From: Ophelia neglecta
Lineage: Eukaryota
Assembly: GCA_965285935.1 (NCBI GenBank)
Contig: OZ260661.1
Span: 136,400,001 to 136,464,000, forward strand
Reading direction: 5' to 3'
Length of the DNA: 64,000 nt
The position numbers were made by a program, and so were the translations under genes. How positions within the stretch are numbered: position 1 is the first letter of the stretch; each line of letters begins with the position of its first letter. Positions 14,101-64,000 of the stretch are shown one piece after another. The notes below the pieces were generated by a model, which saw nothing but the letters and a program-made list of their open reading frames with translations, did not search any database and was not told the origin of the DNA.

Positions 14101-17100
14101 TGTGTTTGCTCAAATAAAGAACATTAATGGTAGCGAAATTTAAGGTTTCTCCTGGGAGCGTCCATAAGTCGGTCTGCCTTTAGCTCTACTTCTCACCCAA
14201 GGTTTTGCTTGCATTTATTTTTCCAGCCTGCTCTTTAATATTTTTCATATACAAATGTTTTCTTTTTAGATAACTTCAAAATGTGGACTTGCTTTTTCAT
14301 TTTTATATTATGTAATTATTTGGCCATCACTTATTATATCAAACTTATATGAAAATTTTCCGGCTTGTATATGCTCAACAGCCACTATGACATCATATTA
14401 CTGCTGATAAAACTTTTGTTGCTAGTTTGTTACCTTCAGGGTTGACAAAAGTTATCTTAGCCTCGCCTGCGGCAGCATTGTAGTCTACCATCTCAATTTC
14501 ACCTCTTCCGGAACGTCGCTTGCTTTCGAAAAAATATTCAATGGTATCACAGGCGATGCTCTGCTTCAACCCTGGAAAACACATGAGATAAAAAACAGGA
14601 CATTAACACTACAATACATCCACAAAGATTTGGAGCGACGGGCCTAACTGGGGTTGGTATGAAGAATGAAAATTGGATTTCAAATTGAAACTACAACAAT
14701 GACATGTGAAGGAAATGGATCAGTGTCACATTGTTGGCAGTGTTTCAAGTGCTGATCTCAATAGGCACTAAGGGCTTATCAATTTTTAATTAGGGGGCGG
14801 GGGTAATGAACTAGTTGTAAGCCCCAGGTGAAATTATATGCTACCCCCCCCCTCACCTCCTAATCGCCCTAATAACAACTTTCCCTATAACCATGTTACA
14901 ACCCCCCCCCCCTCTTCCCTTAGGTTAATTTGGATTTAAGCATAAAAATCATCCAATGCATGAAATTTAATTAAACCTACATATAGATCTAGAGAAGTAT
15001 TCATGAGTTTTTACCAGCGTAATTAACTGCTAGATAAATATTCATTCTTCACAGCCAAAGATCAAGGTGTATGCTGAATAAACAGCATCACTCTAGACAA
15101 GGAATTCACCAAACCATCTGGATGTATTGCACCTGCCCTTGGGGAGCATGCTATATTTTGTTTCAATAAGCAAGTTTTCCGGCCATGTGGTCCAATGTAG
15201 TAATGTGAAATGAGAAAGCCATTGGTGGCAAATTTATTTGCAAATATAAGACTACTACTTGTTTATCAATTTACAAGAGCCATCCAATCTGGTCCTGGGG
15301 AATATTATTTACAAGAAAACCAAGAAGACACCATGGTGATGATAAATAATCAACAAAATTGTTCCCACCAAAATACCCCCCCCCCAACCCCAATCTTCAT
15401 TTCAATCTCCCCCACTCCCCCCCCCCTCCTAGTTTTAATTAGATAACTAGGTTAACCTGTGAAATATGCCCCCTCTAAAAGCACGAGTTGTGTGGGATAT
15501 TTAGTAATCCACATAATTATACGAGTTCCATTGAAGTTTTGATAATGACATCAGAAGTCAGTTCGTTCTTGGGGGGGGGGGGCATTCTAAATCACTAAGT
15601 CACCAAGATATCCCTGATGGGATCATTCTGATAGGAAGTTAACAACTGGTTTCACATCATCACATACAACCAAATTAGCCTCACAAACTAATCCATGTAG
15701 CTCCAGCCAGCGGTGAATGCTATCCAAACCAATTGCTAGACTGACTTATGTGGTTCTTACAGATGTCCAATGTAGTTCCAAGCTGTAGCTGATAAAGCAA
15801 AGGCACAAATGATTTTTCTATTTGACCTTGAAATAAACACCAAGGTCAATTTTGAGAACTCTATAAAATACCCAAAATATGCTTCCCTATAGGTTTGTGG
15901 ATCTAGGTGCTAGCTAAACTAAAGGCAAAATCATGAATATAATGATCTGACCTTGAAAATGAACACCAAGGTCAATTCCATTACTCAATAAGATGGGTAA
16001 AATATGCCTTCTGATAGGAGTCCAATGTTGATCTAGGTTGTTGTTGTTGTTGTTCGGGGTTTTACATGGCTTTCAACACTTATCGGTCATATCGCCACTG
16101 TGCCTACTTGTGACAGTGGGCTCAATGCCCTCTTTAGAGTGCTGCCTCACTGGAGTATCTGCCGTAGACACCAGACAGGGAACTCCACCCAGTCACTTTA
16201 TACTGACACCGGGTTGACCAGTCGTGATACTACCTCCGAAATACCGGGCGCCTGGCAGGGAAGCTATCAGTACCTATTTTTACGTTTTAGGTTTAACGCG
16301 ATCGAGGTTCGAACCCTGATCTCCCACTTGCGAGGCGGACACCCTAACCACTCGGCCACGCTTTGGTGGTCTAGGTACTAGCTTTTAAGGAAGAAATAAT
16401 GATAATAGTGCTCTGACCTTGAAAATAGACACCAGTTATTATTATTATTATTGCACTTTTATAGCGCTTAACCCTGTAAAACTTTAAGCGCTTCACAATC
16501 ACACATGCACATATATGAATTAAGAAAACAAAGTAAATTAAAAGCAATACTCTAGACTAGAGCTAGAATGACTCGAATTAAAATGAGAATGTTTTACATT
16601 AAAACTGTTTGTATATCTTCATAAATAAAAATGTCTTTCATTGCTTCTTAAAAGCTGTCACAGACTCAACATGTCTCAGGGGAAGCTGATTTCAGAGGCG
16701 CGGTGCCACTAACTTAAAACACCGATCCCCATAAGTTTTTGTAGCTGCCCGTGGAACTGGTAGAAGGGACTGAGCTCACGGCCCTGGTCTATGGTGGCTC
16801 ACAAGACTAGATAAATATGGCGGCGCATGGCCGTGCTTTGCATTATATGACAACAGCAATACCCCATAGGCTATAGATTTTGAGCTAAACATTACAGAAA
16901 CTTGGCAAGAACATGAACGTCCATAGATAGGTGGGAATCAAAATATACCCCTAAGTTTTTGACCTCTGCAACCGGCTTGATCTTACTAGAATCAAACCGA
17001 AATGACAAATCCGCACCAGACAAAGGGCAGTATTTTGGACTGAAGAAAATGATTTCAGTCTTGCTACTATTAGGTTTTAATAAATTTCTGTTCAACCAAA

Positions 17101-20100
17101 TATGGATGTCGGCCACACAGTTCTCAACATGCGTGAAAATTATAGAAAAATAATTGCAGCTACTGGCTATAGGCAGTAAATTTTTGGACCCAATACAGAG
17201 CCTTGTGGCATGGCAATACAATGTGGTTTTTCTGCAGACTCCTTGCCATGAATAGACACTACCTGTCGCCTTTTGTCCAAATATGATTTTAGCCATGCCA
17301 GGACTTTTCCACGGATACCATATATATGATAAAGACGATCTAGGACTATGCTATGCTCTAGGGTATCGAAGGCAGCAGAAAGGTCAGGCATGACTAATAT
17401 AGCACTGCTGCCCTTGTCCAATGCCTCAGCGATATCGGAGTAAACCATGAGCAAGGCGGTCTCCGTAGAGTGACCCTTGCGGTATGCTGATTGAAGCGGA
17501 TCTCTGAGGTGCTTTACGCTCAGATGAGACTCTATTTGCATGGCCACAGCCTTTCTAGGAATTTTGAAAGGAAAGGCAAGTTTGAAACAGGCTTATAGTT
17601 TTTAAGCAAATTTTTTCCAAACCTGGCCTTTTCAGGAGTGGTCGGACAAGCTATCATATCTTTTCAAGCTATCATGGAACTCTGAAGAATTAAGCGAGTC
17701 ATTCACAATAGCTGTGATAGGCAGCAATAATTCATTAATACAAAGCTTCAGAAACAAGGTGGGTATGGGGTCAGCCTCATAGGATTTTGAAGGGGAGTTC
17801 ATCATCAGCTTCTCAACCTCGTGAGAGGTGAGTGAACAAACACTGGCCAAAGGATCTCCAGTGAAGGCTGGTTCAATTTCAGAGACGACATAGTTTGGCA
17901 CTGATGCAATGGGTTCACTGTCTGGAAAATCTTATCCCTGATGTTCAAAATTTTATTAAAAAAAGAAATTATTTTACTTCTCACCCAGTTCAGAGTTATT
18001 GATACTATCAGGGAGAATTGGTTCACCATTCTCACCACCTAGTGATTAAGTAATTTTAAAAAGTTGCTTAAAATCTCCTCCGGCCGATTCGACCCTGTCT
18101 TTGAGGTAAGCTGCCTTGAAGGTCAAATCTGAAAACACCAATCAATTCGCAGCCCAGCGTTTCTATTTACACTTTAATATTAATTTAAGGTCTTTAGTCA
18201 TATTATAGAATTTATACTGCAAATAAAAACAGTCAAACTTTTATGTTCGGGGGTTTCACAAGAACAATCCCAGACCATATTATGGCATATTCTTTCTGCC
18301 AAAATAAAAAAAATTAAAAAGCAGGTGTTTTCCTTTTATCATGCGAGAAATGAATGTGGATGCCGGACCCTAAACACCGAATGACATACAAAATAAAATG
18401 TCCCCTACAAAGTATGGTGGTCATAATTAAAAAGAGAATTTAAACAAACATTTGCTACTTTATTTAACTATAATTATCTTCAAACCTTTCACTAGAACAG
18501 TATTCTTCCGCGAGTCAGCATCTAAAATATTCTCTTTGGTATCAAAAGTTACTTCTAGCTTGGACTTTTCCAGAGTCAAAGGTCCATGTTGGAGCACATT
18601 GGCAGCATCTGTGAACAAAACGTACACCTTACAAATAGTTCAAATACCGAGAGTATTGAAAAGTACATAGATTTAGGGATGACACAAGGGCTAAATATAC
18701 ACTAAATAAGTTTCTGCCTTCCTCTATGATACCAAGAGGTTGGAGACATGACTTTAAATTGCTGATTGGTTGTTATACACACATTTAAGAATTTTTTATC
18801 CTGTTTGGTAATACAGCAGTCCCTGCGATGTAGGGCCGACCCTCCATTAGAGCAAAAGTGGCCTTAATTGCAGTTGGCCCTTCGTCGGAGGGAATGGACA
18901 CCCGGCAAAATTTATCTACCCAAGCGTGAAGAATTAATCATTAATTCTAAATAAAATCATCTATAATGCTATACATATTTTTATTACACACCAGTCATCA
19001 ATTTTTACCACGGATAGACACATTTGCCTTATATAAACAGCATGAAGCTGTCAACAGCTACAGTTTTGACCACCAAATATCAAAGACTGATCCCCATACA
19101 AGCTCCAGCACAGCCAAAGCCAGCTATTACAAACAGTCTGCCTGTTAGTCGTGTCGATCAGCCAGACTGTCTATGTGATTAGCACACAACAAACAAACAC
19201 ATTTAATTACCAGCTCTGTTGATATAGTGTATTGCCTCAGTGAATTGGCTGTGTGTCCTCAGTTATGATTGGCTAATTGCAATCACACCCCTGTTGTAAA
19301 CAAAATCCGGCTTCACCCGACAGCCGAGTTTTCAGACGGACAAATTTTCTCCATGAATTATTGTCAAAAAGCATGAAATGGCCACTTGTATCAGAGAATA
19401 AAGGGATAAAATTACTGTCCCCAACCCAATTAAGCAGGTGGCCGGCCATTCCAGGTATTTTTAATGGAAAGACAATCGGCACATTGAAATAATTGCCAAC
19501 CAGAGAGTGCCCATTACAAGGACTGCACATTACAGAGTCTGCTGTATTCATTTACTATAACACTACTTGGTTCAATAAACAGGATGCTCAATTACCTTTG
19601 GGATCTTTAAATGTAATTTTCGCTTCTGTTGAGCCCTCAGAACGCACTACTTCTTCAATGTCACCACCACCTGATCTCTTCTTGCTCTCAAAAAAGTAGG
19701 TTAGCGTATCGTTAGGTGTTTGTTTATTGATTCCCTTCACCTTAATCACTCTTTGGGGTTCATTTGGCAGCTCTGGTTCTTCATTCAGGTTCTTAGCATC
19801 TAAACAAGTTTCAGCAGGGTTAAATCAGTAGCAACATTGACACATTTGTGTTCATCGTCATATGAAAGTAAGAAACACTAATTTAAGAAATTGCTAATGG
19901 TTGGGTTAGCTGAATTAATGGTTATCAAAACGAGCTCAGTGAAGAGAAATCTTTGACTTGAGTATTAGTAGTAGTAAGTTTGTAAACAATACAATAAAAA
20001 CTCCCAGTCCCTAGCACACCAATAACTACCTACTGATTTCTGTGCATTGAGGCCTTGCTTAGTTACAGACAAAACAAAAGGATTCAGCAGTGGTGGCTAC

Positions 20101-37861: not shown

Positions 37862-39340
37862 AATACCCCCACCCCCACTTCACCAAATCAGCACCCCCCC
37901 CCCCCCTGGTTATAAATAATAAATAAATAATAATAATAATTGACAATTAAAAAGCAGCACGAAAGTACAGAAATTGGCTCTACATGCTAGTACTTCTTGT
38001 CGCAAAAAGCCCTATTATCGCCTTATGACTATTATAACAGTGTTCTTGTTTATGTTGTGGTCCTACATAGACGTTGATAACTGTTATGATTAGATATGTT
38101 AAATAACTTATTGTGTAAAATCGTGGATGCTTATTGAAAGTTAGTTCATCTGAAGTGTGTGATAATATCCTGGTTGCCCTTTATATCTCCATATATCGCT
38201 CATTACTCGATCGACACCAAACACCATAATATTTGTCCTTGAACTTGTCAAATTCAATTATAGTTGACACAGCGTAGGGGAAATGCCCACATCATTTTAC
38301 CAGTGAGATGATACTTTGAACCCCATTTGCACGCCAAGCAATAATAAAGAGATTAAGATTTGTCTGGCGTGTCCGTTTGAAAACCGTTGGGCCCAACAAG
38401 TCAGGAAAAAAGCAATATCGACGTGCGTTTCACTCGTTTAACGTTTTTCTAGAAAGAATGTTGCCCGGCAAGTTATTTTTTTCATAGCGCGGCCTAAGAC
38501 CTGCCTTTTTGGGCAAGACTGAATAAGAGAGAATGTCTAAACCTGAGAGACAAAACTTTTCTTATCTATAAATATGAAAACCCAACTTTTTGTCTCAACC
38601 CCCCCTCCCCCCCTTCACCATTTTGCTTATGGTGTTTTCCTAAGCGTAAGCTGTATGATGTAGACGTATAGGGGAAAATGGGTAGCACTGCTCACATACC
38701 GCTTCTCCCGCCCCCGAACCCATCCCATAATACCCCCTTCCCCAATCCATCCTGCCATCGACTTCGTTTCCAGGCATTCCCCTTCCCTTCCAACCCTCTT
38801 GAAGTTAGAGTATAATTAGCACGATATTAATGTCATTTAAACTAATCTGGCTCAACAAGTATAAAAGGGTGGCAGTCAAGGCGACTTTTACAAGATTAAA
38901 ATTTATCATTAATTTAAATTTTAATATTTATTATTAATTTAGATTTTAATATTTATTATTAAACCAAATAACATTTTCTTTGACTGTTTACAGGGTGCGA
39001 ATCTCTAATAATTATATATAGCGAGGCTCCAAGTTCATAATCGAAACTATAATAAATGCACATTTTAGAAGAAAGAATAAACCACTAGTATGCTGGTAAA
39101 GTTTACGTTAGTGATTGGCTTTGAGTATTGTTTCGCCCCATTGCAAAAAATTGGCTATTACACGGAAAGTGGCGGGTCAACTTTAACATAACAACGCCTG
39201 TGCATTGCCCATTGATACAAACTGTCAATATGGTCGAAAACTGTTAATTGTTTAGATTATTAATTATATTGCTTACATGAATTAGGATTGTATTTTTGCC
39301 AAATGAGTGTACAAAAACACTATTTAATTGTGCATTGCAG
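37862..39340. repeat. Upstream (5') block of RRM gene 1, with paralogs at about 49863-50500 and about 59615-60630
   Basis: Shared strings AATACCCCCA.CCCCACTTC, CGCAAAAAGCCCTATTATCGCCTTATGACTATTATA, GCGGCCT.AGACCTG, AAACCTGAGAGACAAA, CTGCTCACATACCGCTTCTCCCGCCC, TTGATACAAACTGTCAAT.TGGTCGAAAACTG. Confidence 0.9.
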
Positions 39341-39682
39341 CGCTCTCTTTGTACTTATCAATGGCGCTTCAATACCCATTACGTGCTCTAATAGTGGCTT
39401 ATAAGAAGTGAGTATACATTTGTATTTCACATTTGACCATTCGTGTGTTCTTAAATCTAGTGGGAATCGAAGCCAGATAAATCCATGTCATTGTTAGTTT
39501 CAGCATGCCCTGTATCGCTTTACCCAAAAGGCTTACTGGCAACTACAATGGCTATAACTGTGCTATGAGCGTTGTGTGACATCACTAGCTAGATCTATTG
39601 AGCGTCACATTTGCTTTGGCCAATCATCCGACTTTGGCTTCCGACGCTAACTGACTCGATCTACCAATGAACGCAGGACACG

Positions 39683-42600
39683 TCACGTAAGCTGGATTGT
39701 ATGAATAAAAGGCATTCTTCTATAATTAAGGTTGATTGTTATGTGATTGTTCACCTAAATCAGTCTTTACATTACGTTAATGTTAAATATTAGACACGCT
39801 CAGTGAATTCAGCATACAAGTCATTGTATTGAGGGCGCGGTACTAGAATGCATCATATTTATTTATCTGATAATACACTCTCCTTTCATAAATGCGATGA
39901 ATATAAAGGACAAAATTTTGGAAATTAAGTAATCATGGGTGGGTTCATACGGAAATAATCGCGATTAATAACACCAACCTCATTATGTTTTACCAGTTGG
40001 TCCACTGCATCTTCGTGTTCACGGGCACGATTGGCGCGATCTTTTTCAAACTCTTTATTCTGCCTCTTTCTGTTATCCTCCACAGCCTTTTAAAACTAAA
40101 AGAAAAACGTATTTTCAATATTTAGCTACGAATATTGTGCGGCCTAGGTGATTGTATAAAGCATAAATATTAATAGCCGGTTAGAGCACTGGTATAGATA
40201 TTTAGCAAAATTCGATAGACAGGCAACTAGGAAAAGTTCATGAAAGCCTTGCATTAAATATAAAGTGGTTCAATACTTTCTGGCCAAAGTAATTAGTGGT
40301 GATAAGAACACAAAATGTCTTCCATTTGGGTAGACCAAAACTAATTAGCTAGGAAAAACTTAATACCTGCTTTTGGAACTCCTCAACTATAGACTTGTAA
40401 GCTGTAGAAACCTGTGCAAGTGATAGCATTCGGCCACGAAAGGGGCGCATGCTTGTCAGCTCGATTGTTTTGATGAAATCTGCAATTCGAACACAATTTC
40501 TTTTCAAACCTTGTCCTAAAGCTTATACGACTGCTTATAGACGTATTACATTTATGGTCATTCTAAAAAGTGTATTATAACCTGTTCAATAAAATCTCTA
40601 TATCTACCTATAGGGTCTCTGAAGGTTACTAAGGCATATGAAAAGATTTCACTACGTTCCACATGCTCGATGCTACCGATCATGAGGCGGGAAAAAAATT
40701 TGCACAGGTCAGAGTCTTTAGTTTCAGCTGGGATATTCTTCACCAGAACCTTGTGGTCATCTACTACACATGGAATATTGACTGCTGGAGTAAGTAACTC
40801 AACCTTAAGGTTACTTCCTTTAGGACTCTGAGGGACGTTTTTCACTCTCCATGCAACTGAATAAAATTTAGAGATTTATGCTTGGTAACTTTGTATTGTG
40901 GTAAAATAAATGTTATATTGTGGTAAAAATTAAATAGTAGAATAATTATCAAATACCAAGGGATAGAGTTGTTACCTTCGACAGACTTGTACGTTATGGT
41001 CACTGTGTGGTCTTTCTTGCAGTCATCGCAATAGAAATCCTCCATTAGACCACCTGCTGATCTCCGTTCACTCTCAAACCAAAGCTCCAGGTAGTCCATG
41101 TCCATATCGGGCGGAATATCAGTAACCAACACGGCCTGAATGAATGCTTTGCCACCATGATCTAGGGAGGTTTGACCAAGTGTTGATTCTTGTGAACAAA
41201 CAAATTTCCTCCACAATCATCATATATTAATTGAAATTAACATATCATGATTGGATTCAAATATATATCACGAACGTATATACAGTGAAGTGTACGTTTT
41301 CTTTGCAGTGGTTCGAAGTATGAAGATAGTACGCACACAATATGCACACTGGGCTTTAGAATCACCGCAAGCCGCCAGCTTATTGGGACGAATTTTCTGC
41401 GTAATGGGAAAAGTCAATCAACGTATCCTGCGCATAGTACGCACATGTTCGAGAGTGACTATAATGCCAAAACACATGTCCTTATCACTCAATTAACAAC
41501 ACATCTTGCCTCCAAGGGAAAATCCGCGAGTAGAAAAAGTCCCCTTTGCCGTTTACAAAGGCTACTAACCATTTAAGCATTTTGCGCTATTCCTTGAAAA
41601 TGATTTCAATAAAGTTTCGTTCTGACTACGACTACATTCAAGAAGGTCGGTGTTGTTTTGTCAACGGGATGATAAGGCTATAGCCCAGGGGGCCAGTGGT
41701 ACGTTCATAGAATGTTATAGGAATTATTAACATGATTACTGTTCTTAGCAATGGGCCCTTGCCACAGAGTAGCTTTTTTGTATAATTCTTAGCCGTTCGC
41801 TATGAAAAGCACATTTCTTCTCTATCACATACATTTAACTTCCATCCTCCCAGCGCAGCCGAATGTGGAAATTGCCGCCTAGTGTTGTATTATCCGCCAA
41901 GGTGGAGCCAGTAATGTAGTACAGTTGACGCTTGTGATTCCCACCAATAGTAATTGGCCTCCGTAGACTCCGACAATGTATGATTATGCTTCTCTTCTCT
42001 GGTAGTTGGTTCTACCAGTCTAGCTTGCTGAGCTTACCCGATGAAACAAAAAAGCCAAGAAGGCACCAATACACTTGTTCCCAATGAGCCGTAGTTTCAA
42101 ATCGCTGAGTTCTAAATATGGATGAGCTTTCGATCCGGTTATATCGAGTGGTTGCTGTATTAATTATTTGAAATTAATCTCGGGTCTAACAGACTTTTAT
42201 TAGCTTTAAATAAGCTAACACACTCCACATGAGAACATCTCCACCTGTTGCGTTTAGGGTAGACATGAACCGTGTAGCTATGTAAATGGTCGCCTCTAAT
42301 GATAGCTTATAATTCACTGTCGAGACGTTTAGCTAACGGCAATTTTCCTATTATAGGTAACCAAACAATATCCCATCCTCGGGGAATAAACTAGCACATT
42401 CTGCATAAGCAACTCTTCATTTCTATAGTTTGTATGGTGCATGCAAGATTCTCCATCTACAGAGATACGCACTTGTTCCTCTGACAGGTTGTTTAATGTG
42501 GCGAGAAGATTATTTCTAACATTTTTCCAACATCGAAATTAACAGAATATAATATCGAATTAATTGTGACCTGCATGGAATTGGTAGAAGATTAGAATGC

Positions 42601-45600
42601 TAAGCTTTGTATCATTATAAGTCACAAAATATAACATTGTTTTCCATTATATATTTTTATTCCTATACACTTAAAATAGGCTTAATATATACCATCTGCA
42701 ATCCAGATTGTTCAGTATAAGCCTACAAAAAATACGTTTATTATACCATGACAATCATCCCATGTTCAAAGAACTCAGCTGTTTTCTTTGTGACACTTTA
42801 GTAACGTGTTATAGCTTTTACATTTTATTATAGACAAAGGCAAGAAAACCATCACTCTTTAATGTGTGAGTTTCCACATGGCGTAGGTGATCCCAGAATA
42901 TAACACGGAAAGGTACCAGCCTTGCCATACTATTCGGCACGGCAGAATGACATTCATACACACTCATGCCATAGACTTGTCCATGCACATAGTAGATAAA
43001 TGGACATTTGGCAGATGAACGAGACAAGCATGGAACTATTTGCTTATCAATGCGCTTTGCCGTAAGACAAGTTAACTTCTTGACTTAGGGCGTATTTTTG
43101 GCGTACTCGTACGCAAATATGTCACCGAATACGCAAAGAATACGTATACTTCACTGTCCATTTAGAAAAATAAATATAACACTAATGAGCCACACGAAAA
43201 TGAATTACACATTACCTTCAACATGGATCGTGTCTAGTACTGGTTTCTGCGGGAGCCTTTTATACAGAAAAAACAAGACATATACTTATTCATAATTTGT
43301 TTCCTTTTGCAAATCATGAATAAACAACGGTTTTGTCCTTTCTCACTTATATGTTTAAATGTTTGAACAGATGTCCACAACAGAATTGTTCTATTTATAT
43401 CTAAAATACATATAGCATTTTATTGAAGATAAACAAAACAAATTTTATCTTACATCATGTGTAAATTATCAAGCGCCGATTCTGTAGGTAGTACTTCTAA
43501 TGCATAAGCGCCCGGATGGGTCTGAACACCGTCTTGATAATGACTATCCATAACTCCCAAGCAATCATACAATTTTGAGACACACAGCTGATGTCCTTTA
43601 ATAGTGTGTTTTCCTTCCAAAACACTGTGGAATACTATTAAATAAACGACAGTGAGTGGATTAAATAATTTAGACAGTCATTTTAACAATCATAATTGCT
43701 GATGATCCGCTGAAATCTGAGTGATTATAATTATATGTTGTACATCCGGTGGGTGGAAACCACCCTTATAAATATTAAACATTGTTATCATATTTCCTGC
43801 AATTATACTCCAAAAATGCCGACACAACTTGTTCAAACATTTTTAATCTAAAATTTGAAGGCCTATTCTACTCGAGCACCAAGACAAGTTTACAGTTTTG
43901 CTATAGGTTTCATATGAATTAAACTTTGTTTCATACCTAAGAAGGCTAGCCATTCCTTCAAACATGCCAAGTTAAAAAAGGCATACTTTCTAAATTATAA
44001 TCTTAAACCGTGTAAGGTGTTTAACCATGTTAGCCACAGTGAACGCTTCTTTGAAATTAAGTAAAACAAAGACAATAATCATGCTTATCGTACTTCTTGT
44101 ACAAAGCTAATTTCGCAGTTGGCATCCTCAAAAGAACTGTGTTAATAATATTAAAACAATAAATCAATAAATAGGCACCATTCCTGATTTATAACAAATG
44201 ACTTTGTCCTTCGTCTCTATGCAATGTGCAATCTTGTCCGGCCACAATGTAAGCGTGATTCGTACACACGAACGACGAAATAAATAGCCAAATGCACCCC
44301 TCACTTACTCTATGGGGTCAGCAATTGAAGTCCCTTGGGTTATCGAACTGTGGGTTCTCTTTGGCAATATATATGTCAGTTAATTATATACCTTTGAACA
44401 TTGAACTGGCTTTGCATACGATAATATCCAATTATTTGATATTTGCGTCAATTATCTGCTATCGATTAAACATTTATGATGTGCTATACGCTAGAAATCC
44501 AATATAAAAACACTATATTTAACGTCAATAATGAAGGGGAGATTCTTGGCAATTTATGTGACCCTTCCTCTTTGACACCATATAACAATGTTTTTTTCCC
44601 TTAGAAAGAACCAGGTACACATGTTGTAATACTATACGTGTGGTCAGTCTTTTTAATTTGTTTCTAAAGGTATCCAAATTATTTTTTAAACCTACCTTCC
44701 TCCATCTCAAAATGAATCAACACATAGTCCTCATCAAAATGAGGATCATATTTTACGATTCTTCCTCCTCCATTTCTGTCGCTTTCGAAGTACAGGTCAA
44801 TCGGATAGTCGACTAAGCCTTTGACACCATTAACTTGAACACCCTTTGTCTTGACCACCTGCTCAACTGATAATATCGTTCCACGATATGGTCGCAGTTG
44901 TAAAGTCCTTGCTAACTTCATGAAATCTATATATCAAAGAAAAAAATGCTTCATTACCAATAAGGCGAGCATTCACGGCATTTGGAAAACACTTAACACA
45001 TATTCTTATTTATTACAGTTACCCATTTATGGTGAATACTCCCGAAAGGATTCATTAATGAAATGGTAAAAGGGTTAAGCAAAGAGGCATGTCCTGCATG
45101 TCAGACAAGTACAGCATTTACTATTGTAAACTGCATTGATTTAATCTGAAATTTAAATGACGTGCTTGACATTGCTATGTATATAATAACACTAAACATA
45201 CAGCATTGTAGAAGATGAGGTGGATTCATTTCTGTCCTTCTGGTGCACCTTAAACAACTTGGACAAGACATTCTATAAACTACAGCATAAAAACTAAACT
45301 TTCTGCCATCATTTCTCCAAACGTGTTTCAATGCCGTGTCATCTACATGTTAGAGATGAAAAAATCCGTACAAACCGCTCTATCGTATTAATCAAGTATT
45401 AATCAAGTTTGGTGCGACTTATTACAATGCGTTCCAAGTTCATTTCTCGTTTGGCCGAAATTGAAAGTTGGAACTGTGCTGGTTTTACTTAACGACTTTA
45501 ATATGTTGACATTGGTCTTCGTTGACCATATGCAATACACTACAAAACGCAACTCTACTCAAAGTAGTTGACCAGTGCCGATTAATGGTAACTCTAGTGC

Positions 45601-46923
45601 CTTTTCGACATTTGCTGGATGCTGCCTTTGTACAGATCGAGTTTAAGTGTTACTAGCTACCTGACCTGAAACCCTGAGGAAAAATTCAAATGTGAACAGA
45701 TACCCGGGAGACAAAGGGAAATGATTTATCAGAAAATGTTTTCTTAAATCGGTCCGAAATAAATAGGTAATGTCCTCTGCAGACCTACACAGACCAATAC
45801 TTAGTTATCTTAGAATTATTTAAATATTTAAAATATAATAGAAAATATACTTCAAACAAATAGTAATCTTTTAACCTTGGCAATGATGTTTAATTTCCTT
45901 CTATATATTGAAATGATGTATGCTAAAGTAATTACTCCTAGAACGAACCTATTGGGCATTCGAACACCACCAGTGCTTTGGCGGGATTTGCACCGCATTC
46001 AATACTTTCGACGGAAGAGTTTTCGTAGCGGTGGAAGAAGCGGTGTAACTCTTTTGTGCTACTCCCAGATGGTACATTTGTTACAAGCACCAATCTGTCA
46101 TCAAGAGAACCCTCCACTTCCGTCACATTGGGATCCGCGGTTAGCAACTTGACATTGACTTGGATTCCCTTTGGGCGCTGGGGCATTTCGGCCACTCGCT
46201 CTGCAACTAAATGGATGTAATAAAACTAGTACAATAAAACACACACCAGTTTGAATAGTTGTGGTTTCTCGTGGTATTGGTTATGACATAAAGCACAGCT
46301 TAATATTTAAAAGGCTTTAGTTTTTTTGTTTATTTGATATATTGGAAGAAAACGGGAGTGAATACCAGCTACATAAGCAAAAATCGTTTATAAAATGTAT
46401 TACATTAAATCGGTGCGAAATAAGCTACGGGCAGTTGAAGGGCCAAAACATCGATCCCCAGTATGAAGAAGGTCGTTCATGTTATAATAATATCGTCATT
46501 GTTTATGAGGAAAGGAAAGAGTTCGGAAACTCAACAATATTCGCGAAATAATGGCTTAACAATACTAGCTCTGATTTCCAACTAACAGCACAATAATCAA
46601 CCCTTTTCACTTGCAAATGACTGCATGTGGTTTATTACAGCTGGACATTGTTTGCGAGCAAACAATGATCCCGATATGTCTAACATATTATTTTGAAAGA
46701 ATAGAGATGATTTGGAGTCAAAAATCACATAAATTACCTTCGGCAGATTTATATGTAATAGTGACAGATTTGTTTGTAGACAATTCATCAGAGTAGAAAT
46801 CCTCCATCACGTCTCCTCCTGATCTATGCTCGCTCTCGAACCAGAGCTCTAGGTAGTCTGCGTCTATGTCAGGCGGAACATCGGTAACCACGACGGCTAA
46901 ACTTCGTGTTTTACTAGCAGGCC
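39683..46923 (-). CDS. RRM gene 2: five PARP14/NID-type RRMs plus C-terminal charged, coiled-coil-like tail; own first coding exon not found
   Basis: Phase-consistent exons: 46738-46923, 45949-46206, 44696-44926, 43454-43634, 43216-43256, 40976-41161, 40608-40856, 40367-40479, 39979-40086, 39683-39691 (LT*, uncertain). Motifs YLELWFESEHRSGG, LYFESDRNGGGRI, YLELWFESERRSAGG. Tail EEFQKQAVEDNRKRQNKEFEKDRANRAREHE. Confidence 0.8.
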
Positions 46924-48361
46924 CTACAATACAAATCACTTTAAGTACTATTGACCCCCCCCCACCCCAATTATTATGGTTCACCATTTAGTGTAATGGA
47001 TGAAAGGAACCCCAACCCTCATCATGTAGTCTGCGCCAATTGAATAAGTTTCAAGTCGTTTGGAGGTGTTACAGGCTTTTTGATTGGTTCAACAAAAGTA
47101 GTAAACCAACGAATCTACTTCATATCGGAGATTAGCAACTCATCATCCTGGAAGTGGTAAAGTAGGAATGCTCTGTATGGCTCTCTCACGATGCTAAGAA
47201 CGTAGCGTCGTGAAGGTCGTAATATTTCACAAATGAAAGGCCCCATTTTCCAGGCTATTTTCTCGACTTCATGTCCAGTCATATGGGGCGATTAAATAAA
47301 GGTATTGTGTTGGAGTGTACGAAATGTTTGTATTTTTCATCCCACTTTAGGTCTAGATACACTTCATTGACGCGAAGCCTGTCTAAATACAATGCTATTT
47401 GTTACCAACCCCCCTCCCCCATGGTTTTTAGCACCATCTATCATTTTGCAGCTTGCTTAACTTGCATCCGTTATAAAAAATTTCCAGACAGAAATTCTTG
47501 ATCAATATAATACATGACTGCATTATCCATATCAATTCATTTAGGCTTGTCAGCTTTTAGTATAAAGCGAGTGGGTGTCACTGGATGATTTTATTACACT
47601 TTTGCCTCTTACTTTGAAAAAAATCGTTTTTTACCAATTATTAAGCATGTTCCATGATTAAGCGTGCCTGATCGAAGGATCGGCCGAAATGAAAATGTGT
47701 GGCTAACTGTCGCATTTCTAAACAATGACCCATCAGCTCGTGCTTAACGTCTCAAGGTACGATAGTACAGGTCGTACCTTCAGTAAATGACGTAATGATT
47801 AAGGGCTCGTCATGGCACTTTAGTAATGGCAAACCATAACATCACCAGCCCTCATGTTTAATAATAAATAGCATCGTTTTCTTTATTAGTTGTTGAGCTG
47901 CTATATAGTAAAGTGATACTGACTTTATTTATTGCACATGTTGTATGTACGATACAAAATCAGTTCTTATTCAATTCATAAAGGTATTTTTTTTTGATAT
48001 AGTGAAATCACACATTCTTGAATAATCGGCAGCTATTCAAATAAGCAATATATCCAATACAATTGTTTGCCATATAGGTATAATGGCATAGTGCCGAACT
48101 TTTTCACGTCTGCCGTAGATACAAGGCAAATTTTGCCCTGTATTAAGCAAGTATGTACACAAAGAGCAAACAAAAAATGTTACAATACCTGCGTCTCTGA
48201 TAATGTGTTCAGACTGTCTTCCCGAATTAAACCTACAGTTAAATGTCACCAAAGAAACCAGTAGAAATAATTATATAGTGTTCATGATCAGAATGTGCTT
48301 CTTGTGCTTTGTTTAAAATAGGAATTTACTGGCCGCATAATATCTGAACGAGTAAGCTGTC

Positions 48362-49566
48362 TTACCTTTCCCAAATATTTTCGAATGTCGGTCTGCTAGC
48401 CGGAACAAATGAAAGACATCTCGCCAAAACGTTTTCTATATCTTCTAGAATCTCTCGGAGGTCACTGTAGGTTGCGGAGTGCTCTGGTAAATGTCTCTTA
48501 TTGAAGAGGGCTGCGATGCACCTTTTCAAATCTTTTGATATACTTGTATCCGCCTTGAACTCTTTTTGGAATGGATAGTCAAGGTCAGGATTCAAAATAC
48601 AGAACAATATACAACCATAGGCCCAAACATCAACCATTTTTAGATCAGAAAGGCTAACCGTTTTTAAGTAGCCAAGAATTGCTTCTGGGGCCTGGAATGG
48701 AATAGTTCCCCTGTCAACGCTAGAGGTCCGGGTTGACAGGGCTGTGTTCGTCTGGATTTCGAGGGATCGCGCTTCTCCAAAATCAGCAATCTTACAATAA
48801 ATGACAAGGCTGTCGTCTACAACCCCGTTTGTCGTGTTACCTACGAGGATATTCGACGGTTTTAAGTCTCGGTGTGCAATGCTTTTGTTGTGCAAGTACG
48901 ACAGTCCTTGAGCCGTTTGGTTTGTTATAAGTCTAAATATGTCATATTCTTCTTGAAAGGTACGGACAGCATTCAATGTATGTAGCTTTTTCAGAAACCC
49001 GCCAAGAGTGGTCACTACATCGTCAACGCCATAAGGCTTGAAGTTAAATGCGACGTATTCCAGCATCAGGGCAAGCGGGTTTGCTACAACACCCAATATA
49101 GATACAATATGGGGATGTTGGAGTGCAAAGAGGACTTTGATTTCTTTTATAAACCGTTTAAAGAACTCTTGATCATCAACCATAGTCTTTAAAACACTTT
49201 TGGTGGCTGCAAATGAATATGTAATATAATTAGATATATTGTAGAAGAAAGTATATTTGAATATTGGTCAGTAGATCCCTTGCATGAAAGTTTGTTAATG
49301 TTGGGTTTTAATGTTTATCATGTGGTAGTATGTTTACCATGTGGTACTTTATTTTCTTGTGTGATGTACTTACTTTCATGGTATTTCGTAGACACCAATT
49401 CCACTTTGCCAAAGGTCCCAACACCAATAAGTTCTTTATCCTTTATGTCATTTGAAGTCCAGATTTTAAGTCCGACATCATTTAAAGCCTGTATACGTGC
49501 TTCATGTTCACCTGTTTGAACATCAGTTTGCAGTTGGATCTTTCTTGTTGCCATTCCTACTTGCAT
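48362..49566 (-). CDS. Intact Ser/Thr protein kinase (TKL-like), at least 2 coding exons
   Basis: Exon 49374-49566 (GVGTFG loop, donor A|GTAAGT) joins in phase 1 to exon 48366-49206: VLK, FIKE, HRDLKPSN, DFG, GTIPFQAPE, DVWAYG, SRP. No internal stops. The end has either a read-through TAA at 48362 or a strong AG|GTAAG donor leading to exon 48189-48232 and then 48033-48109. Confidence 0.9.
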
Positions 49567-50516
49567 GAAAATATCAGTTTAAGGTCACAAGAAACTCAAA
49601 CCAAAATAATGAATGAGAGTTACTTCACTCTTTATTAAGGGACCATTTCTTTGCCTTATGAAGTTAATTAATTGTTATTTAAGAAGTATGTAGATGCTAT
49701 GACTGCTTCAAACAAGCACGCTTTGTTATTGTTAGATTATTGTGCCGCCTATCTCATAGTCATACACACTCGGCTTCGCTGTGACTATGGCGAGCTGCTA
49801 ATAATTTATGTCGGGCCACTGATATAGCGTAACGCCCTGCAATATCATGTTATTGGTATATTAATACCCCCAGCCCCACTTCGCCCCCCTTGGTGATAAA
49901 TAATGAGTGGCCCCAAAAATTTCGTTAAGCTAATGGAAGTTTCAGTTACAACCGTTGATTGTCTCAGAATATCTAACTGTGTTGCCCTAGATATCTGAGT
50001 TTGCTGGTTTATGTTGAGAAGCGCAAAAAGCCCTATTATCGCCTTATGACTATTATAGCAGTGTTCTGGTTTATATTGTGGTCTTACATAGACATTGATA
50101 ATTGTTATGATTAGATATGTGAGTTAACTTACTGTGTTAAATCGTGGATGCTAATTGAAAGTTAGTTCATCTGAAGTGTGTGATTATATCCTGTTTGCCT
50201 TTTATAACTCCATATATCGCTCATTACTCGATCGACACCAAACACCATAATGTTTGTCCTTGTACGTGGTAAATTCCATCATAGCTGACACAGCGTAGGG
50301 GAATTTTCCACATCATGTTACCAGTCAGTTGATACTTTGAACCCCATTTGTACGCCAAGCAAGTCAGGGAAAACGCTATATTGACGTGCGTTTCTATAAA
50401 TAATGTTGCCCGGCAAGTTATTTTTTTCCATAGAGCGGCCTAAGACCTGTCTTTTTGGGCAAGTAAATAGGAGAAATGTCTAAACCTGAGAGACAAAAAA
50501 AGCCTCAGATGAACAG

Positions 50517-50999
50517 TGGAGAATGGGTAGCGATGGGCCTGAGGCGTACAGGGGAGAACGGGTAGCGATGGGCCACAGATGTACAGGGGAGAATGGGTAG
50601 GGATGGGCCACAGAGGTACAGGGGAGAACGGGAAGCGATGGGCCACAGACGTACAGGGGAGAATGGGTAGCGATGGGCCTGAGACGTACCGGGGAGAATG
50701 GGTAGAGTGGGCCTGAGACATACAGGGGAGAACGGGTAGCGATGGGCCACAGATGTACATGGGAGAATGGGTAGCGATGGGCCTGAGACGTACAGGGGAG
50801 AATGGATAGCGAGGGCTTGAGACGTACTGGGGAGAATGGGTAGGGATGGGCCTGAGGCGTACAGGGGTGAATGGGCAGCGATGGGCCTGAGACGTACAGG
50901 GGTGAATGGGTAGCGATGGGCCTGAGGCGTACAGGGGTGAATGAGTAGGGATGGGCCACAGATGTACAGGGGAGAATGGATAGCGATGGGCCTGAGACA
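50517..50999 (+). repeat. 35-bp G-rich minisatellite, about 14 copies
   Basis: Consensus GGGCCTGAGACGTACAGGGGAGAATGGGTAGCGAT; explains the repetitive ORFs at 50440-51000. Confidence 0.95.
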
Positions 51000-52130
51000 T
51001 AGAGGTAAACTATATTGCTAAAAAAAAACCATGTTTATGCAGTACAGATCCATAGTTGTACAACATTATTATTACATACTGACCCTATATCTGAATATCG
51101 TTGTATTGATTAAACACTAATCTATATTTGAATCACGCCAGAATTAAGACTCATAACGAAGAAGTTCCCTAGAGCATGTGATATTTTTATGACACATTTA
51201 AAAACTGTTCATTGAATACAGCTTTTCCAGAAAACATCTTCAGGAAGTGTTGGGTGGAAGATGATGATGTCTTTTTTATTAAAGTTAATGTACACTTTAT
51301 TTTTATGTGTACTAGAAATGAAATCCCAACCTACCTACCTTCTTTGGCCTATTACAGGAAACAAATGTTGTTGTTTGTTGCAGTTTTACTTAAGGTAAAA
51401 GGTAAATATTGCTACTAATCATAGATGACAATCTTATTAATGTCCATTAACGTGCATGTTGCTACTAATCAGATGTAAGATTAAGATGAAGGTTAATAAT
51501 GTTGTTACATTTGCACAATATTTAACAGATATTTTACACAATGTGTGACCGTATTCTCTCTAATTATTGCCCATTATTGATCATTATGTTTTGGGGTTGT
51601 CTGGCATACAATGTTGGTGAACTACTGTAGGTTGCATGGCATTGTATTTGGAGCAGATCCTAAAACCAAGATGGCTACCACACCCACAACCATTTAAGAA
51701 TGATATCGCTTAAACCCATGAAATGATGTACTCTACATTTCTTACCAAAGTACCATATATTATTCTGTAATGTATTGGTTTGCTATGCTTCAGGTGCAGA
51801 TGCACAGTATTCTAGAGGAAGCTTTTTTTTGTTAAATTATTAATATTTCTGCCATTTTTAAAAAATGTGTCGGCAAAGGTGTGTGATTTTGGTCATGAGG
51901 GAAGGGGTAACTGTCTATGGTAAAACCAAGATATTCAGTTATCTACCCCTCTTTTTACAGTGACCTGTCAGAAGTTGAAAGAAAGAAGCATTGGGAGCCC
52001 TCAAAAGTCACGAGAACACTAGTCCGCTTTTATCTCCATGAGGAAGTGGTGTATGTTCCACTCAAAACAAGCAGAACATGTTTGGTATGTAATTTTTAAA
52101 ATTAATGTATTTTGGGGAGTAACTGGTTAG

Positions 52131-59255: not shown

Positions 59256-62200
59256 CGAGGCGCAGATACCGCCCGCTCTGTTACCTTCGCTGTTTAGGGG
59301 TCCCTTTCAAAGTGCTTCTCGTGAATGACCAAACAAGATTTTCCTCGAGTGTGTGCTTTGCCGGCTTTTTCATATTGTAATAACTGATTTTTCTAAATGG
59401 AAAAACGTTACATATTCAGATAGTACATTTGCCTTCGATCACCAGTTTTCATCAACCAGAACAATGTTGCTGAATTTTCTAAACCCGCCCTAACAAGCCT
59501 CTTCCAGGCACAACTACACGATAATGACAGGCCCTAGAAATTAGTATTGGGGTAGTATAATATGCTTCGCTTTTGCCTTTCGCGCGTGTTTTCGCTTTTG
59601 CCGAAAAAAAAGATATATCGACAGTGCGTGTCACTCGTTCAACGTTTTTCTAGAAATTTTTATTCGCCAAGTTATTTTTCGCTTGCGCGGCCTCAGACCT
59701 GCATTTATGGGCAAAACTAAATAGGAGAGAATGACTAAACCTGAGAGACAAATTTTTTGTTACCTGTAAATATGAAAACCAAACTTTTTGTCTCACCCCA
59801 AAAGTTGTGAGATTCGAGGACTAAGGAAAACATTAATTTCGGGAATCCGAGATTGCGGCAAAATTAACTCTTGATGGTCTGATATGGATCGCTGAATCAT
59901 ATAGCCTACTAAGAAGACCTTTCTCTCCGCTCACTTCCAATTCTTGGGCCACCTCCCACTGCCAGCATGCCTATTTCTCAGGCAACAACTGCTCACATAC
60001 CGCTTCTCCCGCCCGAACCTATCCCATCCAACCCCCTCGGCGTTGTTTCCAGGCATTCCCCTTCCCTTCTATCCCCCGCCCCCTGACAGCTGGAGTGTAA
60101 TTAGCCCGATATTAATGCAATCTAAACTAAACTGTCCCAACAACTATGAAAGAGTGACAGTCGAGGCGATTTTGGTAAGATTGATATTTATTATTAATTT
60201 TAATAACACTTTCTTTGACTTTTTGCAGGGTGCGATGCCAGAATCTCAAATAATTGAAAATAGCGAGGCTCAATATTCATATTCGAAAATATAATAAATG
60301 CACCTTTTTGTAAAAAACAACAAAAAAAACTGGTAAATCACTAGCATGCTGGCAAAGGTTTACGTTAGTGAATCAACCCCCTGTCCTGTATTGACTAACT
60401 TTTTAATGGGATTCGTGTATTGTTCGGCCCCATTGAAAAAAATAGTTACTACACGGAAAGTTGTATAAATTAACCCCTGCGCATAGCCTATTGATACAAA
60501 CTGTCAATCTGGTCGAAAACTGTTTATTTTAGCAGACACGTTTAGATAATTGATTATATTAGTCCCATGAATTAGGATTGTATTTTTGCCAAAAAAAAAG
60601 TACAAAGACATTCTGCTGCATTGCAGTGCTCTATTTTTCAGTCATTACTAAATATAAAGTATTCATGTCCCAAATAATACAACAATATAGCGGGATCTAT
60701 TTTTTAATTTTATTTTCATTTCATTTTTTTCTTCTGAAACATAGACATTTGTAGTCTCTGCACAGTAGTTCAGGATTTATGTAAATTTACCTACTAATAG
60801 GACACCTACGCCATAGGGCATCCAGTCCTCTTTTTCATGTTGCACATATATACAAATTGTAGGTGTGATTGTTGGTTGGCGTTGGTTATCTTAATTGTTT
60901 GCCACTGTTTTGATACTGCTTGTTTTATTGTTATCAGGGTACCTGTTAAATTGTTTATCATTTGTTTGTACTATGTTGTTGTTACATGGCAATAAACTTA
61001 CTTACTTACTTATTTGCCCTTATCTTTGGAACATTTGTACATATGCTTCAGTGATTCCCTATGTAGTGATGGTGGTATTCATCATAATGGCTGCTTTAGC
61101 ATTCCCTGATTAAATGAAGCTTTTCCTTTTAATAATATTTTATTTATAATTAATCAAAGACTGACATTTTTAAGTCCATTTGACGATAACGACTCTGTCG
61201 GTTAATGAAGTAAACCCATGTTTACAATATTATAATAATCAAGCGGAACATAGAACATTTATAAGAATAAAGTTGCCCCACCTTATGATGAAATATTAAT
61301 AAATCAAAGCTTGTTACTTATATATCTTCAGAAATCACAGATGAATCTGAAGTTAAAACATGGGATCCAATCTTTGCTATATTCATGGAATATACGTATC
61401 AATCATTCCTGACTCTCTTAATTTAGGTATTAATATAAATAATTTATATATAAAATCATTGAATTACATCTGCCAAAGCAATTCCAGTGTTTCAGTGATA
61501 TATGCTGATTTATGTTGATTAACACGTATAAACCAGTTTTGAATATGCATATGTTTATAAATATACAAATATTCATGTATAATATGTCTCGACCCATAAT
61601 ACACTCTTCAAGATCCAGTTTAGATTTCGTTAAGGGCACAGGAACCACATGGCATTTAGTAAATAAAGAGCGTTCTCTAAGTCCCTATGATGACAATTCT
61701 CCGTCAGTGCAAATAACATGTTAGGTGCTAACGTTATTGGTCTTAACAATCGGTAATAGTTTGGGATATAGGGGATTTCTCAGCGCCATCACTCTCTGAT
61801 TGGCTGACTACGGTGGTCAATAGTGGCTTATTGGCTCACAACGGTGGCTATGGTTGTTTTATGGTGAATGCTGGTTAAGGCTGGTACTCTCCGATAAGTG
61901 ATACATACCGGTAGAACAGCGAGAGCAAAGCGATCCGCCATTTTGAAAGGGATAGCGTTCATGAGGACTTCGGTAAGCTGGCAGTTTTGATATCGGGAAA
62001 ACAAGGGCTACATTTCTGTATTGGAGTCAGACCCGGAGGAATAAACACACCAAGGGGCTTCTCAAGACCCTCGTTATAGACACTGCCATGGGATTCCGCG
62101 TTCATGTATTCATTAAGGGGTCAATATACATAGTATACTGTACGGGCAATAACGAAATGTAACTAGTCAACCAATGAAAAAAAATACCTGTAGGGGTAAC

Positions 62201-62871: not shown

Positions 62872-64000
<1,129 letters not shown>

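Follow-up and report, generated by a model that had tools for sequence, protein, structure and literature searches.

The stretch of DNA analysed here (64,000 nt; hereafter the window) carries on its minus strand, from 49566 to 39925, what we read as one protein-coding gene, built of 12 or 13 exons, in which a kinase and an array of RRM-like exons are joined. Going by the exon sequences, we give this reading a probability of roughly 0.8. In our reconstruction, 12 minus-strand exons form a stop-free frame of 2685 nt (894 aa) with its stop at 39925, and all 11 introns have canonical splice sites and compatible phases. A 13-exon alternative of 2640 nt, the length given in the original prediction, diverges from this model at the 3' end only, where a donor at 39979 leads to a 9-nt last exon (39691-39683); the joined frame proposed there holds in the 12-exon reconstruction. 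The encoded protein would consist of the kinase, a linker of ~15 residues, five PARP14/DTX3L-type RRM-like domains and a short charged tail, the RRM-like domains falling into two tandem cassettes (m1-R1-R2-R3-R4 and m2-R5-R6-R7). The predicted features, with exon borders marked by a slash, are as follows.

49374-49566, minus strand: kinase exon 1 (193 nt), with the ATG and the glycine-rich loop GVGTFG, ending in phase 1 at /gtaagt
48366-49206, minus strand: kinase exon 2 (841 nt), the remaining kinase domain (HRDLKPSN, DFG, APE), ending in phase 2 at GAAAG/GTAAGA (48366)
48189-48232, minus strand: linker mini-exon m1 (44 nt, ~15 residues), taking phase 2 to phase 1, bordered by tag/ and /gtattg
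48033-48109, minus strand: possible alternative last kinase exon, inside the 1265-nt m1-R1 intron; not taken as part of the main product
46738-46923, minus strand: RRM exon R1 (186 nt), in phase 1 at both ends, acceptor tattgtag, borders kept in paralogues
45949-46206, minus strand: RRM exon R2 (258 nt), weak RRM signal
44696-44926, minus strand: RRM exon R3 (231 nt), RRM_PARP14_3 at 2.3e-04
43454-43634, minus strand: exon R4 (181 nt), ending in phase 2 at GAT/gtaaga
43216-43256, minus strand: second linker mini-exon m2 (41 nt at this locus, 44 nt in diverged paralogues), taking phase 2 to phase 1
40976-41161, minus strand: RRM exon R5 (186 nt), a duplicate of R1 with 68% protein identity
40608-40856, minus strand: RRM exon R6 (249 nt), a duplicate of R2; RRM_1 at 0.0044 and RRM_PARP14_3 at 0.0046; borders conserved
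40367-40479, minus strand: exon R7 (113 nt), resembling the start of R3
39925-40086, minus strand: tail exon R8, a charged, helical-looking tail with stop TAA at 39927-39925 and the alternative donor at 39979 to the 9-nt exon
39858-39863, minus strand: AATAAA, candidate poly(A) signal 62 nt past the stop at 39925

The kinase half is readily recognized. Kinase exon 2 by itself matches Pfam Pkinase (PF00069) at 6.4e-34, with 118 bits against a cut-off of 31.7. GVGTFG and VLK, the latter with the beta3 Lys, are present in the kinase translation, the alphaC Glu (E14), HRDLKPxN, DFG and PE are invariant across 15 aligned kinase sequences, and the domain looks catalytically competent as far as its motifs can tell. 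Its best solved relatives are generic (ULK1, CaMKK2 and a MAP2K-like protein, at E ~1e-13), and, at the level of sequence comparison, the clade is without a close characterised relative. The same family also includes stand-alone kinases with identical catalytic motifs, but these lack downstream RRM exons. They read on to a stop within the kinase exon, whereas the RRM-linked clade stops at the splice donor, and those examined (P0003, P0007 and copies in this genome that are 39-41% identical) branch outside the RRM-linked clade.

In the predicted gene, m1 makes the junction between the two halves. The original prediction described a kinase exon with a phase-2 AG/GTAAG donor, which we find on the minus strand at 48366, and an RRM exon at 46738-46923 in need of a phase-1 upstream exon, which does begin in phase 1; its 44-nt exon at 48189-48232, shifting phase 2 to phase 1, is borne out by both borders and phases. 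Across the paralogues in this genome, m1 has AG/GT borders in 45/46 kinase copies, and its coding frame is open in 45/45. In a comparison of subfamily representatives, this frame is free of stops in 7/7, whereas stops interrupt the other two in 6/7 and 4/7. The sequence of m1 is itself conserved only modestly. It has no gaps across a 16-copy alignment, and its ungapped, splice-anchored identity is 0.57, as against 0.42 and 0.38 in the adjoining intron; we used this measure because gapped identity is uninformative here, the aligner yielding ~0.59 on shuffled sequence.

A small extra exon between the RRM cassettes had also been implied, and such an exon exists. Paralogues keep a 44-nt linker exon between R4 and R5, and in a phase-constrained scan the 41-nt m2 at 43256-43216, one codon shorter than in diverged paralogues, ranked first among the candidates in the window on phase, open frame and resemblance. 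Another candidate for m2, found by short-word BLAST at 42.16 kb, was rejected, as the sequence there is not an exon. Since an equivalent linker joins R4 to R5, m1 appears to be an internal exon type of the cassette.

Assignment of the RRM-like exons to the PARP14-type families (Pfam PF23085 / PF23222) is clearest for R1, which matches RRM_PARP14_3 at 9.2e-06 with 26.1 bits, above the cut-off of 24, and is the only exon to exceed Pfam's own threshold for an RRM family. R3 (21.6 bits), R5 (19.9), R6 (17.5) and R2 (14.5) fall under the PARP14 RRM cut-off in an exon-wise scoring that splits every domain. Among paralogues, R3 exons match at E <= 0.01 in 11 of 12 cases and R2 exons in one of 13. Profile searches against the PDB with single exons returned weak matches to canonical RRMs only (E 0.02-0.8), each domain spanning an exon junction. 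A Pfam scan of the exons gave no dsRBM match. The link to NMI/IFP35 drawn in the original prediction was not borne out, as no NID match was found at E <= 0.1 in the eight non-kinase exons searched against Pfam.

The locus belongs to a large family. There are 46 kinase copies in this genome, on contigs C1, C5 and C9, with identities of 61-98%. A matching R3 exon lies 1.5-3.9 kb downstream on the same strand in 45 of the 46, every R3 exon of this type has an upstream kinase, and the pairing is one-to-one genome-wide. All 15 copies sampled have the RRM exons in the same order, with R1-R7 in 13 of them and R5 and R6 missing in two copies on C9. Paralogue introns diverge while exon borders stay conserved. 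Four copies, this locus among them, are 97-98% identical and lie within ~200 kb. The m1-R1 intron, 1265 nt here, is unusually long for the family; a transposon as its source was rejected, the long intron being confined to the four near copies.

Outside this genome, a contig of another organism (L031) has a sister kinase, 50% identical and grouped with support of 99/95. A similar first exon precedes it, and it ends in a phase-2 donor. Next comes a compatible mini-exon of 56 nt, although many alternative mini-exons fit there by chance; beyond it lie exons resembling R1, R2 and R3, with a Macro domain after them. An exhaustive search of public proteins with the kinase gave a best identity of 50%, and no RRM exon was found in the best 150 matches; ten long public protein matches had no RRM, Macro or DTC domain by Pfam. 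A word-index protein search returned one distant kinase only, and an atlas search returned generic kinase clusters only. No RRM exons were found on the contigs of P0003, P0004, P0005, P0007, P0008 and P0088, some of which are too short.

That kinase and RRM exons form one gene is thus supported by the conservation of m1, by the strict kinase-RRM pairing in ~45 paralogues and by one contig from another organism. The paralogue pairing, the conserved m1 and the sister kinase elsewhere also suggest that the fusion is old and was then amplified. The gene had been proposed to be newly assembled at this locus, which does not hold: the fusion predates subfamilies that are 63-72% identical in the kinase and is common to the 50%-identical sister kinase. 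By its predicted layout, the gene is one of ~45 paralogues on three contigs, with a kinase-RRM junction that was inherited rather than made at the locus.

The joint inheritance of the two halves could also reflect two transcription units that travel together in segmental duplications. The kinase-only gene would end by intronic polyadenylation or at 48109-48033, and the RRM gene would start from a promoter in 46.9-48.2 kb, with the ATG at 46987 as its start codon. The original prediction had itself warned of an alternative last exon and AATAAA motifs, and both are indeed present in the 1265-nt intron. Two units would also fit with an in-frame ATG upstream of R1 in 13/16 copies (here at 46987) and with the immediate stop that is met, after a complete kinase domain, when the kinase donor is read through, and duplication alone would pass on adjacency. 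However, this would leave unexplained a 44-nt exon with acceptor, donor and open frame in 45/46 copies, of a linker type that also connects R4 to R5 within the RRM part. The intron ATGs have no conserved position, and in diverged copies no more than 350-700 nt lie between the kinase and R1. The m1-R1 intron holds no copy of a block that precedes the kinase and has two further copies elsewhere in the window. In an alignment of the first 330 nt after kinase exon 2, the other 15 copies have nothing that corresponds to the opening 47 nt of the putative last exon (to 48063); the remainder of 48109-48033 falls within a block shared with the nearest copy at 96% identity. We consider two separate units improbable. 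Because intronic ATGs precede R1 in 13/16 copies, kinase-only and RRM-only isoforms are possible alongside the predicted fused product.

A different concern is that, while the family does have the fused layout, the copy at this locus is a duplicate that has fallen silent or is decaying and yields no protein. It is, after all, one of the four near-identical copies, m2 is one codon short, and other subfamilies have far smaller m1-R1 and m2-R5 introns. Yet 12/12 exons are preserved intact, free of stops and flanked by canonical splice sites, and omega for kinase exon 2 against the three near copies is 0.2-0.5 rather than ~1, although the counts are small. The same comparison with near copies, again with small counts, indicates purifying selection on both the kinase and the RRM half, and we regard decay as very improbable. 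It seems still harder to credit that the gene is longer than modelled, with the tail exon skipped and the transcript running into the downstream RRM/Macro/RING-DTC gene, which extends from ~35.4 kb to below the window start. Such long forms do exist among the paralogues (near C1:139.52-139.66 Mb), a conserved GAG/GTTGGT at 39979 suggests that R8 is sometimes not the last exon, and Macro and DTC exons lie on the same strand as the kinase-RRM gene just below the window start. Against this, AATAAA follows the R8 stop, R8-like tail ORFs recur in other subfamilies, short-form ones included, and more than 4 kb separate the two genes, including a copy of the block also found upstream of the kinase, intergenic- or promoter-like in look. 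No Macro match was found in 39.6-49.6 kb of the window and no RING-DTC or DTC match inside the gene, the nearest (62878-63883) being part of the upstream neighbour. A search of 38-52 kb gave no Rfam family.

The single fused gene, our preferred reading, probably derives from DTX3L/PARP14-like genes, since four paralogues continue past the RRM exons into KH_DTX3L, Macro, RING and DTC domains. The kinase may have been set at the 5' end of such a gene by way of the linker exon, phase 2 to phase 1, through which the RRM cassettes were already connected. Loss of the KH, Macro, RING and DTC part from most copies would have followed, with amplification of the short form. The locus lies within a multi-megabase cluster of Macro- and DTC-encoding genes, and PARP14-like genes are also clustered in other animals (PMC13224862).

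Several known systems invite comparison. The gene resembles DTX3L/PARP14 in its RRM-like repeats, which match the Pfam PARP14 RRM families, in its long-form paralogues and in the dense Macro/DTC gene cluster around it, but it has no Macro, WWE, RING or DTC domain and no apparent ART domain, and it has an added N-terminal kinase. The DTX3L/PARP14 system couples ADP-ribosylation and ubiquitylation in antiviral defence; to our knowledge, the role of the RRM domains in the vertebrate system is still unclear. PKR (EIF2AK2) combines dsRNA-binding motifs and a kinase in one chain. Here, in contrast, the kinase comes first, the reverse of the order in PKR, RRM-like domains take the place of dsRBMs, and the kinase is not eIF2alpha-kinase-like, PKR being absent from its best solved relatives. 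UHMK1/KIS has an N-terminal Ser/Thr kinase followed by a single C-terminal UHM, which is RRM-like, whereas the gene here has five PARP14-type repeats in two cassettes; the likeness is one of layout only. In the literature searched, we found no account of a protein in which a kinase is joined to PARP14/DTX3L-type domains. The word 'kinase' has 0 occurrences in a study of DTX3L/PARP14 evolution (10.64898/2026.04.23.720386), and PMC13224862 has a glossary mention of CHK1 only and no kinase fusion. The predicted combination of a kinase with a PARP14-type RRM array is thus a layout for which no description was found.

How such a protein might work can be outlined from these comparisons. The RRM array may bind single-stranded RNA or DNA, or may dock onto neighbouring DTX3L/PARP-like proteins, and clustering by a ligand or partner could then switch on the N-terminal kinase by trans-autophosphorylation. 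Ligand-driven clustering with autophosphorylation, by a PKR-like logic, is plausible by analogy. A nucleic-acid-sensing and immune function is something that we infer only. More speculatively, and in our judgement unlikely, the ~45 genes could constitute an undescribed class of invertebrate innate-immune sensors, in which a DTX3L/PARP14-derived RRM array recognizes foreign RNA, ssDNA or ADP-ribosylated nucleic acid, the signal being passed on directly as phosphorylation via the fused kinase, and in which the long forms join a kinase, a Macro ADP-ribose reader and a RING-DTC ubiquitin ligase within a single protein.

If transcripts confirm the fused product, these genes would be a large lineage-specific family in which the nucleic-acid-binding part of the DTX3L/PARP14 system is coupled to a kinase. 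A natural kinase read-out on the RRMs would offer an easy way to ask what their ligands are. The short and long forms would show immune genes being rebuilt by phase-compatible exon shuffling and then amplified. There is also a practical point for annotation: gene finders that miss the 44-nt exon will split ~45 genes into kinase and RRM halves.

The predicted kinase-RRM gene could be rebuilt on the minus strand by joining the following exons with local scripts and checking the reading frame.

49566-49374, minus strand: kinase exon 1, carrying the ATG and the GVGTFG glycine loop (from translation)
49206-48366, minus strand: kinase exon 2, the remaining protein kinase domain (Pkinase, 118 bits)
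48232-48189, minus strand: m1, linker mini-exon of 44 nt, with splice borders ctgtag before and gtattg after
46923-46738, minus strand: R1, RRM-type exon requiring one carried base (RRM_PARP14_3, score above the Pfam cut-off)
46206-45949, minus strand: R2, RRM-type exon (conserved borders)
44926-44696, minus strand: R3, RRM-type exon (conserved borders)
43634-43454, minus strand: R4, RRM-type exon ending in phase 2 (conserved borders)
43256-43216, minus strand: m2, linker mini-exon of 41 nt (counterpart of a 44-nt exon in paralogues)
41161-40976, minus strand: R5, a copy of R1 starting in phase 1 (conserved borders)
40856-40608, minus strand: R6, RRM-type exon (conserved borders)
40479-40367, minus strand: R7, RRM-type exon (conserved borders)
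40086-39925, minus strand: R8, tail exon (conserved borders)

All 11 introns of this model have AG/GT borders and compatible phases, and the open frame spans 2685 nt (894 aa). The original prediction had relied on a phase-2 donor at the end of the kinase, a 44-nt exon at 48232-48189, and the need of 46923-46738 for a phase-1 upstream exon, all of which were borne out on the minus strand: kinase exon 2 ends at a phase-2 donor (GAAAG/GTAAGA), and m1 follows after 133 nt. The proposed 13-exon, stop-free frame of 2640 nt was indeed open when joined, and our model departs from it at the 3' end alone. There, the frame could either stop in R8 (39925) or leave R8 through a donor at 39979 to enter a 9-nt exon (39691-39683), as first modelled. 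An AATAAA lies at 39863, after the R8 stop, while the next signal beyond the alternative stop is 355 nt away.

The phase-2 end of R4 and the phase-1 start of R5 implied a missing exon between them. The R4-R5 interval of paralogues contains a conserved 44-nt exon, of which m2 is the slightly shorter form. The gene therefore reads as [m1-R1-R2-R3-R4][m2-R5-R6-R7]-tail, in which the phase-2 donor of the kinase takes the role of the R4 donor. This equivalence makes m1 an internal exon type rather than a stray fragment, and suggests that the kinase was attached by phase-compatible exon shuffling.

An open frame picked from among ORFs is weak proof of a junction, and we therefore turned to paralogues. 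The kinase exon is present in 46 copies (61-98% identity) on three contigs, C1, C5 and C9, and R3 in 45 copies genome-wide at at least 48% identity. Pairing by position placed an R3 exon downstream of 45 of 46 kinases, on the same strand and at a distance of 1.5-3.9 kb; genome-wide, no R3 exon of this type was found without a kinase. The order of the RRM exons was the same in all 15 sampled copies, with R1-R7 complete in 13; R5 and R6 are absent from two C9 copies (L018 and L023). Three kinases at 39-41% identity had no RRM exons within 10 kb. In diverged copies, R1 begins just 350-700 nt after the kinase exon, a gap in which a terminator, a promoter and a first exon would be hard to accommodate.

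The m1 exon is a stronger test of the junction than this pairing. A 44-nt stretch preceded by AG, followed by GT and free of stops in the coding frame was found in 45 of 46 copies, the sole exception being the copy that also lacks R3 (C1:139248529-139249314), which may be truncated or rearranged. Across 16 copies m1 aligns without gaps, while the flanking introns are full of indels. Among seven subfamily representatives, its coding frame is open in every one, the other two frames contain stops in 6/7 and 4/7, and its ungapped identity is 0.57, versus 0.42 and 0.38 in adjoining intron windows. The encoded peptide varies considerably, as expected of a linker. At the level of gene structure, these genomic data support a kinase-RRM fusion well.

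Several features count against the fusion or point to additional products. An alternative last exon of the kinase within the m1-R1 intron is possible: as originally noted, both AATAAA motifs and a putative last exon are present there, and the intron, at 1265 nt, is 3-4 times longer than in other subfamilies and unique to the four near copies. However, the first 47 nt of the putative exon have no counterpart in other copies; the remainder lies in a block common to the nearest copy. An RRM-only isoform from an internal start is likewise conceivable: in 13 of 16 copies, the final 80 nt of the m1-R1 intron include an in-frame ATG, although the positions of these ATGs vary from copy to copy.

Both halves of the predicted fusion look like maintained coding sequence. 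In an alignment of 15 kinase sequences, the catalytic motifs (alphaC Glu, HRDLKPxN, DFG, APE and those of the later subdomains) do not vary. Against the three 97-98% identical copies, omega came to 0.2-0.5 in the kinase exon and, over six RRM exons, to 0.43-0.50, all from small counts. Solved kinases are all distant (best E ~1e-13, to generic families), and the RRM assignment comes from Pfam matches, one above the curated threshold, together with weak PDB profile matches to ordinary RRMs. In stand-alone kinase relatives the exon reads on for another 10-20 residues until it meets a stop, whereas the RRM-linked clade ends exactly at the splice donor.

An exhaustive search of 1.84 billion public representatives returned no relative of the kinase above 50% identity, and no RRM exon accompanied the kinase in the best 150 matches. 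The best match, P0001, comes from another organism: it is an ORF of exon size in an ENA assembly, on a contig of 70.8 kb (locus L031), where kinase, R1-, R2- and R3-like exons, a Macro ORF (8.8e-28) and an ankyrin-repeat ORF follow one another on one strand. The last of these starts with an ATG (14382-15287; Ank_2, 5.9e-47). The L031 kinase exon carries a phase-2 donor (GT) at the place corresponding to that in the window. A candidate 56-nt mini-exon, whose acceptor is pyrimidine-rich and whose donor reads gtattg, keeps the frame open into the R1-like exon; since other mini-exon candidates there also fit by chance, this shows that the parts are compatible but falls short of proof. The 12 RRM-linked copies group together (100/98) in a maximum-likelihood phylogeny of 32 kinases (leaving out P0015, P0020, P0021 and P0024 onwards), P0001 is their sister (99/95), and the stand-alone kinases P0003 and P0007 fall outside the clade. 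These results are consistent with the kinase-RRM link having arisen once, before the divergence of the two organisms.

At C1:139.52-139.66 Mb, the 10 kb downstream of four copies contain neighbouring ORFs that match KH_DTX3L (weakly), Macro (4.9e-31), RING and DTC. None of these domains was found in the window's kinase-RRM gene, nor were Macro or DTC exons found near the C5 and C9 copies; R8-like tail exons recur across other subfamilies of this short form. At C1:136.2-140.6 Mb lies a very large cluster in which over 50 exons encode DTC and over 50 encode Macro, many of them within long open frames. A DTX3L/PARP14-like gene may thus have captured the kinase, after which the catalytic C-terminus would have been lost and the short form amplified, an order that we infer with some reliance on L031. 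In one long-form paralogue (L016, 5370-5687 and 5746-5910), a module of ~40 residues (DH.DLD.IRR.DVSIDDSKQRF.QP.LYGKWK) is tandemly duplicated before the KH/Macro ORF. Two C5 copies (L024 and L025) have fibronectin type III-like repeat ORFs ~1.8-3 kb past R7, probably a separate downstream gene.

PKR and KIS likewise combine a kinase and an RNA-binding domain in one protein, and domain shuffling is common in expanded invertebrate immune families. We did not find a kinase fused to PARP14/DTX3L-type domains in the literature, including work on DTX3L and PARP14 evolution. The most economical mechanism, drawn partly from the likeness to PKR and partly from known DTX3L and PARP14 biology (PMC13224862; 10.64898/2026.04.23.720386), would be that a ligand or partner clusters the RRM array and thereby activates the kinase; candidates are single-stranded nucleic acids and neighbouring DTX3L/PARP-like proteins, respectively.

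Upstream of the kinase gene lie the RING-DTC exons of a DTX3L-like gene (62878-63883, minus strand), which continues past the window end and has its Macro exon just beyond it (C1:136464799-136465116). Elsewhere in the window, genes without a kinase contain RRM-like exons at 9266-9683 and 19594-19746 on the minus strand, which resemble R3 and R6 more remotely, at 36-41% identity. Some 0.9 kb ahead of the kinase ATG, a 35-bp minisatellite (50502-51005; 14.5 copies, 85% match) gives rise to spurious minus-strand ORFs that are long and rich in proline. Finally, a block recurs at 50022-50498, 38001-38555, 59647-60636 and 38500-39350: its copy ahead of the kinase matches the one just past the end of the gene at 78% identity across 556 nt, portions of it recur near 59.6-60.6 kb, and it looks like an intergenic or promoter unit of a tandem array.
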